A stretch of DNA of 64,000 bases, taken from the NCBI GenBank assembly GCA_965603825.1, contig CBFDEM010000006.1, positions 186,001-250,000 on the forward strand. Direction: 5' to 3'. The DNA comes from Blepharisma stoltei ATCC 30299 (lineage: Eukaryota; Protista; Ciliophora). Positions 12,088 through 63,789 of the stretch are shown in pieces (position 1 is the first letter of the stretch; every line of letters starts with the position of its first letter). Position numbers and translations under genes: made by a program. The notes beneath the pieces are model-generated. The model saw only the letters and a program-made list of their open reading frames with translations, did not search any database and had not been told where the DNA came from.

Positions 12088-13386
12088 ATGGAAAATCTCA
12101 AGGTTCATAAATTTCTACTCAGAAGAACAAGTGAGCAAACAAACCATCCAAAGGTAGGGCTAGAATTCATAGAGCTTATTTTATCAGCTTTAAAAAGAAA
12201 TAATCAAAAATTTTATTTAAATATACCAGAAACAATTGTCTATCTATTCGGCTGCAGTGAACCCCACATGATATACACAAAAGACAACGGACAACTATCA
12301 TGACATGAAGAAATAACTTCAAGCAGGTAAACATTAATTAGTGTGCGTCAATTTTTTAAGCGCTGCTATTATTTTAAAAGAGAGCAGTTTCCTGTTAACA
12401 TAATAAAATCAGATAGAGGTAATTTTTTTGACTCTTGCAAATGCTTGATGAGCACAAAAGAGTGCTATGGGATTTGGAAGCAGCATATTAAATCAGGAAA
12501 TCCAATCCTAGTACAAAGATTTATAATCTGCCCAAAGAAAGAAATATTTAAGATAAGAATCACGTATATCCCTCCCAAAGGCATTTTTTATTGTAAATTA
12601 ATAAAGAATAGGATTGATGTTCTAGGAGAACCTGCCAATCCTATAGAAGGCAAAAGTGGCTGGAAAAAATTTAGAAAATTTTACTCCCATGAGCCTAAAA
12701 AAGTTTTTACAGCTGAAGATAAATTCTTGGTCAGAAAAACTCGAGACTCATCTTATACTGAAAGCGAATTTAGTATAAATGACTCTCTGAGATCACAAAT
12801 GGAGACTTTGAAACGAATAATAGAAAAAGGCAATTTTATTAACGGAAAAACTAATTGCCTAGAGCTCCAAGCAGATTTTGCACAAGATGCCGATGAAAAA
12901 TGGTACTTTCTAAATTTGGTGCATTATAAAACTGAATTTTCTATCCAAAAGAAGCTGAATCCAGCATCATTTGGGCTTATTATGGATCGTATTTCAAGGA
13001 GAACTGCGAAGTCATCTTATGGGAAGCACAAAATCAGCTTAGCAGATAAGACTGTTATTTGCTCATCTCCCAATAATAAGCAAGAACCTGCAATTAGCGT
13101 CACAAACGCCAGACCTCTTTCAGCAGATAAAAAGCGCAATTCCAATTTTCTTTCTCCAAATACATCTGCAGCTAAACTGCTAACAATGTCATCTATGAAA
13201 TTAGATAATTCCCAATCAAGCATTCTTTTAGAAATACCCCATCTTGATGAAAGCAGAAATAGCTCTACAGATTCATTGACAAAAGAAGTTTTAAAAGACT
13301 TGCAATCATTTAGCAGGCGAGAATTTGAAATAAGAAAAAAGCCAAGATCTAAAACAATGAACGTGATTAGGTCTAAAATTAGATAA
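12088..13386 (+). CDS. Uncharacterised protein, possibly a degenerate ATP-grasp-like fold; intron 12327-12341
   Basis: TGA=Trp at 12301 and the 15-nt intron GTAAACATTAATTAG join the two ORFs. LVQRFI and ADFAQDADEKWYFL weakly resemble ATP-grasp segments. Confidence 0.6.
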
Positions 13387-58829: not shown

Positions 58830-58996
58830 AAATAATGTTTAATTTATGCACTTCTTTTTAAATTGCAAGTAATTCTTAATTTTGATTTTCAGAAGCATAT
58901 AATAAATCTAAAACATTTACACATTTTATACTTATATTTTATTATAAATTCAAAAGAATAGGTATTTTTCTTTTATTCAATTTGAATAATAGCTCA

Positions 58997-59716
58997 ATGA
59001 CATTAAATAAATTTACCCTCTTATGTTTATTACTTGAACTTGCATTAGGAAACGATTTAGAATTCAAGCTGCAAGAAATTCCTAGCCCTTATTGTAAAAA
59101 CTCATGCAGTTTTTCTGAAGAATATCTAAATCTTATCACTTTTACAGTCTTAGCTCGCATAAGGCCTTCAGATAAACGCTACAAAACGTTTTTATCAGCT
59201 CTTAAGCTAATGATAGATCGCAATTCTTATAGACTTATAGAAACTGGCTCATACCGAGCATCAGATGATAAATTTTGTGTCCGAGACGGGTGTGGAACAT
59301 TAATTTTTTCTCAATTTGCTTTTCTTACTGACAGAGAATTTACCTCAATTGATATAGATCAAGAAACAGTTGAGATATCAAGAGAAGCTGTCAGTTTTTT
59401 TGGGGATAATACAAGATTGATTTGAAGTGATAGCATTGAATATTTGTCAAAAATCAATGAAACAATCGACTTTCTATATCTTGATAGTTTTGACTATGAC
59501 GAAAATAGCCCTGAGCTCTCTCAAGAGCATCATTTAGTCGAAATTATGGAAACATATAATAAACTACATAAGGATTCTATTATATTGCTTGATGATTGCA
59601 ATTTACCTTATGAAGGAAAGTGCAAGCTTGTAGGAGAATTTTTAGTTGAAAATGGTTGAGAAAAGGTAATGGATGAGTATCAAAGAATTTACCTTCATAA
59701 AGATAGCTTTCTTTAA
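58997..59716 (+). CDS. Class I SAM-dependent methyltransferase (Methyltransf_24-like) with signal peptide
   Basis: Motifs LIETGSYR, DGCGT, SIDID, IDFLYLDS, HHLVE, ILLDD, GK and G-W...YQ; two TGA=Trp. Confidence 0.8.
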
Positions 59717-59847: not shown

Positions 59848-60519
59848 ATGATGTCAGATGCCAACGAAATTACTGATTTTTCTGAGTTACCTCACAAGAA
59901 AATAAAGCTTGAACCCACAGAAATTAATTCCAATGATGAGATAAGAATACCTGCCAACGTATCTGATTTAAACGAAAACTCCGAAACCGCTTCGTCCTCT
60001 AACCCACAAGAAGAAGTAAAAGCTTTAAATGACATTAAAAGAGAAGAAAATAGCTTAGAAGATTATGGAGACATAAAAAGGGGCTCAATTTGGCTGGGGA
60101 CTTTTTGCAATAAGCTCCATGGCTCAGTAGCTTGCACTTATATGATAAAATCGTCTAATGGTAAAGTTCTTGAGCAGATGACGAATATTTATTACAAAAA
60201 ATCCAAAGCTTTGTCAGTAATAAAACACTTAAGGAGAGCCATAAAAGTCTGTGGCCGTCGGTCGATGGTCCATATTGACATATGTACAGACAATGACGTA
60301 GTTTTTACCAATTTTGACAAGTTTAAGAAGCTGAATCCACAGTTATTAGAGGAAAGAATGAAGACAAGTGATTTATTTGCCAAATTTAATATGACTCATA
60401 AGTTTAAATGAGTTTTTAAGCCTGCTAATGTAGAAGCAAATAAAATTGCTAGAGAAGAGTTTGAAAAAAGAGATAAAGAAGAGTTGTCTGACTATTCTGC
60501 ACATGAGACTAATCCATAA
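59848..60519 (+). CDS. RNase H-like fold protein, probably catalytically degenerate (paralogue A)
   Basis: Frame extends through TGA at 60409 to TAA at 60519. Pattern of three strands, helix, IDICTDND and KFK-W-VFKPANVEANKIAR mirrors type-1 RNase H (TDS...WV...N..AD.LA). Confidence 0.65.
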
Positions 60520-60731
60520 TAGGAAAATAATTAATTTTTGATTAGTGTCATTTGCTATATAACTTTTCTAACCTTTAAAACTTTTTAAAAAGAGCATATC
60601 ATGCTAAAACTTATATAAAATAAAAAAATGAGATAATTCAAGACGTACTTGATATGCTTACTGAATGATGGTCGCTATTATATTTATAATGCATAGTTTA
60701 AGATAAGAATAATATTGGAGATTGCATATAT

Positions 60732-60821
60732 AAAAATAGTTTTTGCGCCAGGAGAGGTCTTGAATTTCCAACACCCGAGGGACTTGAATATATAAACGAA
60801 GTATCTCCTTAGCTTAGAACT
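60732..60821 (-). ncRNA. Predicted Pol III structured small RNA, copy 1 (90 nt, divergent)
   Basis: AGUU...GCUAAGGAGAUACUUC...CCUCUCCUGGCGCAAAAACUA-UUUUU; terminal stem AGUU/AACU; upstream element at -54..-65. Confidence 0.72.
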
Positions 60822-60874
60822 GAATATATATATTCATTTTAATTTAAATAATAAGCTTATTATCTTTATTTTTA

Positions 60875-60886
60875 TTATGGGATAAG
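60875..60886 (-). promoter_or_regulatory. USE/PSE-like element CTTATCCCATAA (copy 1)
   Basis: Identical 12-mer at the same spacing upstream of all three RNA copies; resembles the CCCATAA core of ciliate snRNA upstream elements. Confidence 0.7.
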
Positions 60887-61371
60887 AAATCTACACTTTA
60901 AAAATATGGAACTATGATTATTAGAGCATCTATGTGGCTTTAAATGACTAAATCCTATTATTAGTTACCTTAGTCAGAATAGGATTTAATTATAATTAAG
61001 AAATGCTGAAATATTTTAACGAAGCTATAACGTCTTAAATAAATATCACCAGAAGATCAGCAAAATTCACTGATCTCAGGGATTCATAGAGCTGAACTTT
61101 CCACCTTAGATTGCTTGAAATAATTGTAAAAGATAATGCTAATTACTTAAACCGATAATAGCAAGTCTACTAGCATTTTATTTTCATCTAAGGATATCAG
61201 ACAGATCAGATTATTATGAGCTTCTTTATATTTAAGATAAGATCATGCTATTAAAACTCTAAAATTGCATTTTTGAACTCTGCATACTAGAGCAATATCA
61301 CTCTGAACAGCAAGGCACAGGCCTTTAGAATCTAAGTAATTTTCAATCTTTTAATAGCTAAAAGGGCAGAT

Positions 61372-61457
61372 AAAAAGCTATTGCGCCAGGAGAGGTAAGT
61401 TAAGCCCGAAGGCATTGATCTTGAATAAATTCAGAAGTATCTCCTTAGCATTGAACC
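61372..61457 (-). ncRNA. Predicted Pol III structured small RNA, copy 2 (86 nt)
   Basis: GGUUCAAUGCUAAGGAGAUACUUC...GCC-UUCG-GGC...CCUCUCCUGGCGCAAUAGC-UUUUU; TTTATAAA at 61478-61485. Confidence 0.75.
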
Positions 61458-61509
61458 ATCTATAATTATCCCAACCCTTTATAAATTTTAATGAATTTAA
61501 TGAATTTTA

Positions 61510-61521
61510 TTATGGGATAAG
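61510..61521 (-). promoter_or_regulatory. USE/PSE-like element CTTATCCCATAA (copy 2)
   Basis: Lies at -53..-64 from the inferred start 61457. Confidence 0.7.
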
Positions 61522-61950
61522 TAAATATTGATGCATCTGATAAAAGTGGATATCTAATAATCAGGAGTTATTTATAATCAAGAAATGTTGAAATATTTAG
61601 CGGACGTAATGTCCTAAATAAATATCAGCAGAAGGTCAGCATAAATCACTAATCTTAGGATTCATAGAGCTGAGCTTTCCACCTTAGATTGCTAGACATA
61701 ATTGTAAAAGATCATGCTAAATACTTAAACCCATAATAACAATCTACTAGCATTTTATTTTTATTCTAAGGATATCAGATCAGATCAGATTATTATGAAC
61801 TTCTTTATATTTAAGATAAGATCATGCTATTAAAACTCTAAAATTGCATTTTTGAACTCTGCATACTAGAGCAATATCACTCTGAACAGCAAGGTACAGA
61901 CCTTTAGAATCTAAGTAATTTTCAATCTTTTAATAGCTAAAAGGGCAGAT

Positions 61951-62036
61951 AAAAAGCTATTGCGCCAGGAGAGGTAAGTTAAGCCCGAAGGCATTGATCT
62001 TGAATAAATTCAGAAGTATCTCCTTAGCATTGAGCC
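61951..62036 (-). ncRNA. Predicted Pol III structured small RNA, copy 3 (86 nt)
   Basis: Same as copy 2 except U3->C, which converts a U-G pair to C-G in the terminal stem. Confidence 0.75.
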
Positions 62037-62088
62037 ATCCATAATTATCCCAACTCTTTATAAATTTTAATGAATTTAATGAATTTTA

Positions 62089-62100
62089 TTATGGGATAAG
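62089..62100 (-). promoter_or_regulatory. USE/PSE-like element CTTATCCCATAA (copy 3)
   Basis: Lies at -53..-64 from the inferred start 62036. Confidence 0.7.
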
Positions 62101-62230
62101 TAACTATTAACGCATCTAATAAAAGTGGGTATCTTATAATAGGAGTAATTTATATTGAAAGGCTAATAAATTTAGCATTGAAATTATTTATAAATAGAAA
62201 TTACTATTTTATTCGCACTTAATATATAAA

Positions 62231-62968
62231 TTATAGGCTTCCTTCTAATTCATTTTTTTCTTCTTCATTAGAAGACGCAGAAGATTCATCAGATTCATTC
62301 TTAACTAATCTCTCAAACTCATCTCTAGCAATCTTAATGGCCTCCGCATTGGCGACTTTCAGCACCCATCTTCATTTGCAAGTCATTCCCAAGCGGCTTA
62401 AAAGTCCATTAGTTTTTAATCTTTGCTGATACAACTGATTAATCCATTTTCAAACTTTATCAAAAGTCCCAAAAATTTTATCGTCGTCTGTATACATATC
62501 AATATGAGTTATTGACTTCTGATGGCATCGCTTCACTGCTCTTCTAATATGTTTCAATAAGGATAATGCTCGCGATTTTTTGTAGTAAATATTCGTTACC
62601 TTATCGATAATCTCATTATTGGGAGATTTTATTAAATAAGTGCAAGCTATTGGACCTTGGAGCTTTTTCATATAATATGCGAGATATACAGAGCAGGTTT
62701 TTATGTATTTTGATATGTCTTCGTCTTCTTTTTTTATAGGAGGAGGGAGATCTTTAGAGGTTTTTCGGTCTGAAGCATCAAGTTCTTCAATGACGCTTGA
62801 ATTTGACGAGTCGGAATCGCTAAGGTCTAAAATTTCTTTGCTGGGGTGTTTTTCATGAATTGGCTCTGTAGGCTCGATTTTTGTTTTCTTTTGTGGAGCA
62901 CCAGGGCTTGGATGGTAAATTTCATCGAAGATTTTTCGCTTTGAAAATTTACTATTATTAGATAAAAA
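62231..62968 (-). CDS. RNase H-like fold protein, probably catalytically degenerate (paralogue B); start codon unresolved
   Basis: Frame is open 62968-62231 with TGA=Trp. Collinear with paralogue A (PQKKTKIEPTE vs PHKKIKLEPTE; ACTYLIKS; TNIYYKKSRALS; IDMYTDDD; WVLKVANAEAIKIARDEFE). Confidence 0.65.
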
Positions 62969-63048
62969 TTAATACAAATCACAGAATTTAAATTTGATAA
63001 GATTTAGCTTGCTCTGGGGGCTTAGAAACTTTAAATATAAGGTAAATT

Positions 63049-63789
63049 ATGATGGAAAGATTGCAATCAGAAAACAACCAAAAAAAGAGTTCAGACGATA
63101 TCTCTTTGCCTGCAAAAAGAATGCACCCTGAAGTCCTCATAGATGCATCAGAAACACTCAATCGAAGACAAAAACTTGACCCTGAAAATAAAAATCGAGG
63201 CTATTATATTCCCAGGGTGTGCATACCAGTAATCATTTCAACCAAAGAAAACCCATATAAAGCAGCCACTGCAAAAAAACAATCCAGTAGCTCTGAATTC
63301 TCTAATAATCCCTCACAAGCAGCCAAAACCATCTCAAAAGATAAGTCTGAATTAGTCGATTTAACAGAAGATTACCCATCAATGCCTAAACAGCCCGCAC
63401 CAATCGAGAAAAAATTAGATTTTAGTACTCCAACAATAAGCAAAGTCGTCATGAATAATATAGAAGCGTCAGAAACCCTCAAAATTCCTCAAAATACATT
63501 GGAAGAAAATAATCCTGACGATAGAATGGACATTGAGAGTGATACTGAAATAGAAAATTATAAAAATTTAAGAGTGACTGTATATGAAGACACTAGGACT
63601 GTGCTTGATAAGGATGAATTATTTAATCTTTGTGCTGAAAATCGCGTTTTAGAACGCTTTGATAAACTTGTGAAGAAATGCAGAGAAATTACTAATAATA
63701 AAAGACTTGAAGCAGCAGATGTGCTAAGGATTTTAATGGGAAACGATGGAGATACCAAAGATACGCTGCAGTATTTTGGTTATAAGTAA
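63049..63789 (+). CDS. Disordered nuclear-type protein with a C-terminal UBA/Rap1-C-like helical bundle
   Basis: Basic motifs, SIM-like LVDLTED, and C-terminal VLRILMGNDGDTKDTLQYF. Confidence 0.6.
   Translation: MMERLQSENNQKKSSDDISLPAKRMHPEVLIDASETLNRRQKLDPENKNRGYYIPRVCIPVIISTKENPYKAATAKKQSSSSEFSNNPSQAAKTISKDKSELVDLTEDYPSMPKQPAPIEKKLDFSTPTISKVVMNNIEASETLKIPQNTLEENNPDDRMDIESDTEIENYKNLRVTVYEDTRTVLDKDELFNLCAENRVLERFDKLVKKCREITNNKRLEAADVLRILMGNDGDTKDTLQYFGYK

Follow-up and report, generated by a model that had tools for sequence, protein, structure and literature searches.

The window analyzed here, a 64-kb stretch of contig 6 of the Blepharisma stoltei somatic genome, contains a locus in which two convergent paralogous genes, A and B, flank a 1.7-kb spacer occupied by three related structured-RNA units, all on the minus strand (Table 1). 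The spacer holds no open reading frame of at least 40 amino acids. The products of A and B are 49% identical over their domain and 41% identical over 205 residues and, together with the opposed orientation of the genes, bear out the two convergent paralogous ORFs described in a first-pass annotation of this DNA.

Table 1. Features of the A-B locus and the third paralogue (window coordinates; bit scores are to the RNA family covariance model R1)
Feature	Position	Strand	Remarks
Gene A	59848-60519	+	223-aa product P0001, identical to database protein
Small RNA copy 1	60732-60822 (unit 60728-60828)	-	~90 nt; T5 at 60732-60736; R1 76 bits
Proximal sequence element (PSE) of copy 1, TTATCCCATAATAAAA	60870-60885	-	~50-65 nt upstream of RNA
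579-bp tandem duplication	61028-62103		origin of copies 2 and 3
Small RNA copy 2	61373-61457 (unit 61368-61464)	-	~85 nt; T5 at 61372-61376; R1 106.7 bits
TATA-like box of copy 2, TTTATAAA	61478-61485	-	
PSE of copy 2	61505-61520	-	
Small RNA copy 3	61952-62036 (unit 61947-62043)	-	~85 nt; R1 106.5 bits
TATA-like box of copy 3	62057-62064	-	
PSE of copy 3	62084-62099	-	
Gene B	62231-62968	-	paralogue of A; 245 open codons; TGAs at 62452 and 62374
Gene C	contig 13		third paralogue

Because the RNA-seq-type contigs over gene A (59755/59834-60550) and over gene B (62201/62249-62950) are collinear and free of joints, both genes are transcribed and intron-less. Gene A has a single in-frame TGA, at 60409, which is read as Trp. 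The same reading of in-frame TGA was applied for local alignment and tblastn, with the database proteins P0001-P0003 or stop-free pieces as input for searches and folding. P0001 consists of an acidic, Ser-rich N-terminal tail carrying an NLS-like PHKKIK motif, followed at residues ~78-215 by a catalytically degenerate RNase H1-like domain.

The reading frame of gene B begins directly after the stop at 62969-62971, and its first in-frame ATG lies only at 62671. The earliest ATG in the transcript (62925) is out of frame and opens a frame that ends after 32 codons. The N-terminal homologous part of the gene (PQKKTKIEPTE) is transcribed and has no start codon, and 99 codons nevertheless remain open (p~0.005 under shuffling). 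The annotated product, P0002 (146 aa, 62231-62671), is without strand beta-1. Gene B may be decaying, or it may yield this truncated 146-aa product.

A paralogue search of the genome returned contig 6 (twice) and contig 13 only, the latter carrying gene C. Among 1.84 billion representative proteins the family consists of these three proteins, and the same three were recovered by a word-index search of 5.8 billion sequences; neither database contained an orthologue of A, B or C in another species. UniRef names paralogue C an 'RNase H type-1 domain-containing protein', and the Pfam family RVT_3 (PF13456) matches all three paralogues below threshold (best E 2.7e-4). The RVT_3 score of A is 17.7-19.2 bits against a Pfam gathering cut-off of 21.6 bits, which none of the three exceeds. 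Searches of PDB sequences with the gene A protein or profile found no RNase H.

An AlphaFold model computed from an alignment of three sequences only (pLDDT 79.9, pTM 0.77) has the order beta-beta-beta-alpha-beta-alpha-beta-alpha, consistent with the five-stranded mixed sheet of the RNase H fold (b1-b2-b3-aA-b4-aB/D-b5-aE). A single-sequence model of the full protein reached a pLDDT of 42.7 and was left out of the fold search. The best Foldseek matches in the PDB are the RNase H1 entries 4e19, 3hst and 3u3g (E 3e-7, TM 0.71-0.78), which are Halobacterium RNase H1, the N-domain of Mycobacterium tuberculosis Rv2228c and LC11-RNase H1, respectively. All of the top 50 are RNase H domains, either of stand-alone RNase H1/HI or of HIV-1 reverse transcriptase, and the ESM Atlas gave TM values of 0.8-0.87 to RVT_3/RNase_H clusters. 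Modeling and fold comparison, which the first-pass annotation had proposed as its check, thus agree with the RNase H fold claimed there.

The degeneracy claimed alongside the fold is also evident. The trio aligns by hhalign with the genome's own canonical RNase H (probability 77%, E 2e-5), and residues can therefore be mapped onto that enzyme, whose catalytic motifs are YFDGG, NNEAEY, YGDSE and TEADQLA. The first catalytic Asp is replaced by Gly/Ala/Ala; at the catalytic Glu of helix A the trio has no acidic residue; the second Asp, on beta-4, is kept as D/D/E; and the last Asp has become Asn, Ile or Cys. One acidic position of the Asp-Glu-Asp-Asp tetrad is left. Judging by these replacements, which remove three of the four catalytic carboxylates, the three proteins cannot cleave by the two-metal mechanism.

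Compared with type 1 RNase H, the trio shares the fold, the order of strands and helices, a length of ~140 aa and the absence of a basic protrusion. It differs in the replaced catalytic acids, in its Pfam scores below cut-off, in a lineage-specific disordered N-terminal tail with an NLS-like motif, and in having homologues only in B. stoltei in the databases searched. Because the motif PHKK(I/R)K lies in this disordered acidic N-terminus, the proteins are presumably nuclear. We infer that A, B and C are putative nucleic-acid- or protein-binding pseudo-enzymes. The trio is restricted to Blepharisma and would add a further case of an RNase H fold without catalysis.

Each of the three RNA units in the spacer has the same 16-mer upstream, a TATA-like box and a run of five T residues. 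The 16-mer occurs three times in the window against an expectation of 0.12. Copy 1, the most divergent of the three, has an A/T-rich TATA-like stretch after its PSE. Copies 2 and 3 arose by the tandem duplication, whose repeats are 98% identical over a 300-bp block (61202-61501 / 61781-62080) and 85-92% identical elsewhere; its spacer parts are absent from the other loci of the RNA family. Transcripts also cover the intergenic DNA around copies 2 and 3; they come from the same four runs as those of genes A and B and include longer species at 61790-62033 and 61014-61416. Folding of the transcribed segment 61785-62043 revealed no excess stability on either strand.

With covariance model R1, at least 20 members of this RNA family were found in the 41 Mb genome, distributed over at least seven loci on contigs 7, 6, 63, 53, 12 and 50. 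A BLAST-level genome search with copy 1 recovered only copy 1 itself, and the contig 7 copies were reached through the PSE pattern. Rfam models applied to 20 PSE-bearing loci returned one tRNA and nothing else. Family members are ~76-130 nt long (85-90 nt in the window) and fold from both ends, with a 4-bp terminal stem that pairs the 5′ and 3′ termini, an internal loop, and a 10-bp helix whose 5′ strand has a single bulged purine. This helix encloses a variable center, which in most members contains a GCC-UUCG-GGC hairpin. In the R1 alignment, 96.4% of cells are paired and eight pairs change on both sides, compared with 38-57% pairing in slid controls. The compensatory changes fall in the terminal stem and the bulged helix and are already present in a MAFFT-only alignment.

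Every member is followed by a T-run, and the family has a U6-type external promoter, with a PSE at about -62 and a TATA-like element at about -25; boxes A and B show no conservation among members. In the U6 snRNA gene of the same genome, the core TNTCCCATAA is likewise found about 50-64 nt upstream, together with a T-run terminator and an A/T-rich box near -30, whereas the family RNA itself is unrelated to U6. These features point to transcription of the family by Pol III. The covariation, shared PSE, TATA-like box and T5 runs uphold the earlier description of three related structured RNAs, each with its own promoter and terminator. A weak R1 match elsewhere in the window (12522-12593) lacks the family motifs and was discarded, as were 22 metagenome contigs from a pattern scan, none of which (0/22) matches the covariance model; we regard the latter as chance matches.

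We consider these transcripts best called vault/Y-like Pol III RNAs. Rfam assigns no curated family to the locus at E values up to 10 or to the whole window at gathering thresholds. Vault (RF00006) is the only Rfam family with repeated matches, at 26.9 (copy 1), 26.2, 23.0, 18.9 and 17.2 bits, all below its gathering threshold of 34. The family could represent genuine vault RNAs, which would be homologues of RF00006 borne by Blepharisma MVP particles via a TROVE protein, an identity that we find plausible but somewhat improbable. The matches span the full model length, with an E value of 0.007 for the best in an all-family search of 3.8 kb, and the helix plan is shared: terminal stem, internal loop, helix bulged on its 5′ strand, variable center and U-tail. 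Common motifs extend beyond box A to UACUUC after the helix and GGCGC in the 3′ strand. In its paired termini, bulged second helix and U-run end, the ~90-nt product resembles the Pol III transcript that is Vault RNA, to the extent that Pol III is presumed here. The genome also encodes three MVP genes, as well as three TROVE genes. MVP is known in ciliates, and the Trypanosoma brucei vtRNA was identified by similar criteria (PMC3762200, PMC7916137).

Several observations argue against this identity. A majority of the members, the contig 7 copies among them, has no Vault match at all, and matches below threshold also turn up in seven of 14 bacterial genomes used as controls and in one coding-like stretch of contig 64. 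That stretch was the only result of a genome-wide search with the Vault model, from which the family members are missing because the prefilter did not score them. The promoter is external, built from PSE and TATA, and conserved boxes A and B are lacking; the family has at least 20 copies where Vault RNA has a few; and the TROVE genes are open frames of ~600 aa, with no TEP1-sized protein seen.

Such a promoter is instead shared with nematode stem-bulge RNAs (sbRNAs), which have a type-3 Pol III promoter, paired and bulged ends, a variable loop and a U-tail, and which occur in multi-copy clusters. The RNA family has the same set of features, and three TROVE genes of ~600 aa fit the possibility that its members are equivalents of Y RNAs or sbRNAs bound by a Ro60-like TROVE protein. 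We nonetheless judge this unlikely. The Y_RNA model (RF00019), at E values as permissive as 10, matches neither the locus nor seven further loci nor anything else in the genome. A reading of the alignment does not show the Ro-binding helix sequence that is widely conserved elsewhere, and the TROVE proteins have no sequence match to Ro60 chains in the PDB. In the literature searched we found no ciliate partner of a vault or Y RNA described, and we know of none.

Other RNA classes were rejected. Matches to the C/D snoRNA DdR16 at 61044-61124 and 61623-61702 score 19-26 bits where the threshold is 70, lack a box C and were judged to be chance. ARAGORN finds no tRNA or tRNA-Sec in the window. Rfam lends no support to U4, U5, U1 or telomerase RNA, readings that had been suggested by eye, and no repeat resembling a template was noticed.

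That three RNA genes should lie precisely between two paralogues is a striking picture that speaks against coincidence, and the first-pass annotation had suggested that proteins and RNAs might form a linked system. Elsewhere in the genome the two do not travel together. Within the 1.5-5 kb of flank inspected at other RNA loci, and in a genome-wide protein search that scores the best candidates only, 17 of the 20 RNA genes have no RNase H-like neighbor, and one of the three protein genes, C, has no RNA. Comparison of A, B and C with all fetched RNA loci by tblastn yielded nothing, and neither a family RNA nor a PSE/promoter motif is found near gene C on contig 13. The genes beside the contig 7, 63, 53 and 6 arrays have no protein family in common, either among themselves or with A, B and C. 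The ~875-aa ORFs that adjoin the contig 63 and contig 53 arrays are not homologous to each other. The one resemblance is between two short neighboring ORFs at the distal contig 6 locus.

Linkage of protein and RNA thus does not recur at independent loci within the genome, and the proposed linked system is not supported. Because the RNA family comprises at least 20 scattered genes that lack such neighbors, its pairing with A and B looks coincidental. Of the earlier suggestion that the linkage is a by-product, the accidental part fits better. A simple inverted duplication does not account for the locus, since the three RNA genes are co-oriented and A and B, at 41% identity, are old duplicates.

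It could still be argued that the enclosed RNAs have dedicated binding partners in the inactive RNase H-like proteins and that the linkage reflects shared function or regulation. RNase H folds bind RNA-containing duplexes, the proteins carry an NLS-like motif, and the four runs that show transcription of A and B also show it for the spacer near copies 2 and 3. We consider this very improbable. In addition to the missing linkage at most RNA genes and at C, gene B has no start codon, and contig depths do not co-vary, although depth cannot rank genes. Linkage at one locus is itself weak evidence, because eukaryotic genes cooperate without linkage.

We therefore think it likely that two independent items adjoin here, members of an RNase H pseudo-enzyme trio and a group of Pol III RNA genes, and that their relative position is coincidental. 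A, B and C would be a species-restricted trio derived from an RVT_3-type RNase H1 fold, within which B would have lost its start codon and now be decaying or produce a truncated 146-aa protein. Ordinary dispersal would have brought the RNA genes into the A-B spacer, and the local 579-bp tandem duplication would have come afterwards. Going by architecture alone, the family RNA might serve as a La-bound scaffold or as a partner of one of the three TROVE-domain proteins and/or of the three MVP vault proteins.

Specific binding of the vault/Y-like RNA family by A and C, and perhaps by truncated B, is more doubtful still, and we give it hardly any credence. If true, such binding would constitute a ciliate-specific RNP in which an RNase H fold, no longer enzymatic, serves as an RNA-recognition module. 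The system proposed in the first-pass annotation would likewise be a new kind of RNP, which the evidence does not carry. By contrast, an unclassified vault/Y-like RNA family of at least 20 members, in a ciliate with MVP and TROVE, is well supported. We regard it as a more valuable lead than the protein trio, and covariance model R1 supplies a concrete candidate for pull-down.

Positions 186001-250000 of contig 6 make up the window. In it, the 1.7-kb spacer between the convergent paralogues gene A and gene B holds three small-RNA genes (copies 1–3), all on the minus strand. A 16-mer, TTATCCCATAATAAAA, lies about 50–65 nt upstream of each unit in the window (3 matches against 0.12 expected), and all three possess a T5 run as well as a TATA-like box near -25. 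Upstream of the genome's U6 snRNA gene lies the same core of the proximal sequence element (PSE; TGTCCCATAA; TGTCCCATAAAGAA) at -64, together with an A/T-rich box near -30. The RNA genes carry a U6-type external Pol III promoter, and the U6 upstream elements define the Blepharisma type-3 Pol III promoter, which the RNA family has in common with U6.

The promoter motif led to further copies on contig 7. A covariance model of the family (R1), built from eight copies, identified 20 members across the 41.46-Mb assembly of 64 contigs. The 17 members besides those in the window mostly form same-strand arrays with a spacing of 0.3–2.6 kb, and their lengths range from 76 to 130 nt, the difference being made by a variable centre. 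In the RNA, the terminal stem has 4 bp and is followed by an internal loop and a 10-bp helix, in which one purine bulges from the 5′ strand; the centre, variable in length, contains a GCC-UUCG-GGC hairpin in most members. Among the 20 distinct sequences, pairing holds in 96.4% of cells, compared with 38–57% when partners are shifted by 1–3 columns as a control, and both sides change at 8 of the 19 pairs (for example GGAGA/UCUCC to GGAGU/ACUCC, and G-C to A-U in the bulged helix). This compensatory pattern is already visible in a MAFFT-only alignment. Promoter elements, T5 run and covariation together bear out the first-pass annotation's description of three related structured-RNA units, each with its own promoter and terminator. 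A metagenome pattern scan for the family returned chance matches only.

Coordinates of the protein and RNA genes (window positions unless a contig is named)
Feature	Location	Strand	Details
Gene A	59848-60519	+	identical to database protein P0001, 223 aa
Gene B frame	62968-62231	-	paralogue of A
Gene C	contig 13, about 163500-164200	-	P0003, 228 aa; sole further paralogue (genome-wide search)
RNA copy 1	60732-60822	-	
RNA copy 2	61373-61457	-	
RNA copy 3	61952-62036	-	
RNA family, contig 6	262909, 266940 (contig coordinates)		5 members, with the three in the window
RNA family, contig 7	1336, 28013, 30659, 31501, 33339, 34455, 96343		7 members
RNA family, contig 63	within 177108-178884		4 members
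RNA family, contig 53	within 146043-146883		2 members
RNA family, contig 12	121197		1 member
RNA family, contig 50	230680		1 member
U6 snRNA	contig 53, 457433-457536		only one found; 93.6 bits

No family member reached an Rfam threshold. Vault RNA was the only recurring Rfam family, matched over the full model length each time (26.9, 26.2, 23.0, 18.9 and 17.2 bits; threshold 34). The helix plan of our family is also that of the Vault model, and the two have short motifs in common, but the majority of members have no match to the model, and bacterial control genomes and one coding-like stretch likewise give sub-threshold Vault matches. The genome encodes three major vault proteins (MVP; contigs 40, 33 and 25; frames of 831–866 aa); MVP occurs in ciliates, and the TEP1/Tetrahymena p80 relationship and a T. 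brucei vtRNA are documented (PMC3762200, PMC7916137). That these are true vault RNAs is thus a tentative reading, somewhat less probable than its negation. An identity as Y RNAs would fit the presence of three TROVE-domain genes (contigs 30, 27 and 56; open frames of ~600 aa), but is unlikely, as the Y_RNA model does not match the family and the TROVE proteins have no close sequence match among Ro60 chains in the PDB. Given the recurrent sub-threshold Vault matches, the Y_RNA null and the MVP and TROVE genes, we provisionally call the family vault/Y-like Pol III RNAs.

The proteins flanking the RNA genes had been described as degenerate RNase H-fold paralogues, and both parts of that description stand. 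A, B and C match Pfam RVT_3 slightly under its cut-off (best E 2.7e-4), and UniRef names gene C an RNase H type-1 domain protein. A single-sequence structure model was poor; AlphaFold run on the three-sequence alignment gave pLDDT 79.9 and pTM 0.77, with the strand and helix order of RNase H. Foldseek, the check suggested in the first-pass annotation along with AlphaFold, ranked the RNase H1 structures 4e19, 3hst and 3u3g first (E 3e-7, TM 0.71–0.78), two ESM Atlas searches gave TM 0.8–0.87 to RVT_3/RNase_H clusters, and hhalign against the canonical RVT_3 enzyme encoded on contig 11 of this genome gave a probability of 77% (E 2e-5). Mapped onto that enzyme (order A/B/C), the first catalytic Asp is replaced by Gly/Ala/Ala, the acidic residue of helix A is absent, the beta-4 Asp is retained (Asp/Asp/Glu) and the last Asp becomes Asn/Ile/Cys. 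These models and mappings support a degenerate RNase H fold for the trio. An acidic, Ser-rich stretch makes up the N-terminal 75 residues and includes a PHKK(I/R)K motif that may be a nuclear localisation signal. Neither phmmer with A against 1.84 billion representatives nor a profile run against 5.8 billion sequences returned anything besides A, B and C, and hence no orthologue outside B. stoltei.

Contigs assembled from four RNA runs cover gene-sized pieces only (59025-59669, 59755/59834-60550, 62201/62249-62950 and 63053-63767) and contain no joints over A and B, indicating that both genes are transcribed and intronless. In-frame TGA codons within conserved protein regions of A and B indicate that TGA is read as Trp. 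The first of these contigs covers an upstream neighbour (58982-59659, +), whose frame continues through an in-frame TGA and whose pieces match no Pfam family. Gene C starts with an ATG and is intact; it has two in-frame TGA codons, and its N-terminal motif reads MSDFDDIYDSPHKKRK. A and the B frame are 49% identical over the domain and 41% over 205 residues. A stop at 62969-62971 directly precedes the B frame and the earliest in-frame ATG is at 62671, leaving gene B start-less; the first ATG in its transcript (62925) opens another frame that ends after 32 codons. The 99 start-less codons (62671-62968) are transcribed, align to A and C at the N-terminus (PQKKTKIEPTE versus PHKKIKLEPTE) and are open with p~0.005 by shuffling. 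The database product (P0002, 146 aa) starts at 62671 and lacks strand beta-1. Gene B thus appears to be truncated, non-AUG-initiated or recently decaying.

The proposal that A and B form an undescribed RNP with the enclosed RNAs is not supported, real as the features are. Genome-wide, paralogues occur only here and on contig 13, and the remaining RNA loci lie on other contigs or 13–17 kb away. With A, B and C as tblastn queries, no fetched RNA locus gave a match, and no neighbouring protein family recurs among the arrays on contigs 7, 63, 53 and 6 or with A/B/C. Conversely, no family member or promoter motif lies within 1.5 kb of gene C, and contig 13 has no R1 match. The linkage, found at a single locus, is best read as coincidence. 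An accidental linkage had been considered in the first-pass annotation, and fits; its suggested cause, a local inverted duplication, does not, since the three RNA genes share one orientation and so did not arise together with the protein genes by palindromic duplication. Copies 2 and 3 derive from a recent 579-bp tandem duplication, and none of the other RNA loci compared contains the spacer portions of this repeat. The RNA family is a more interesting lead than its pairing with A and B.

RNA contigs at 61790-62033, 61150-61416 and 61014-61227 span copies 2 and 3 plus 160–440 nt on their 3′ (minus-strand) side; none covers copy 1. Copies 2 and 3 are 98% identical, and so are the 166 nt 3′ of them, against 85–92% for the rest of the repeat. 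On neither strand does the transcribed spacer at 61785-62043 fold beyond shuffled sequences. The longer cover could reflect either transcription running past the T5 terminator or an independent plus-strand transcript, the contigs carrying no strand. Two spacer sites (61044-61124 and 61623-61702, -) resemble the Dictyostelium C/D snoRNA DdR16, probably by chance, at 19–26 bits against a threshold of 70 and with no visible box C. Both sit in the duplicated spacer, and one RNA contig covers the first.
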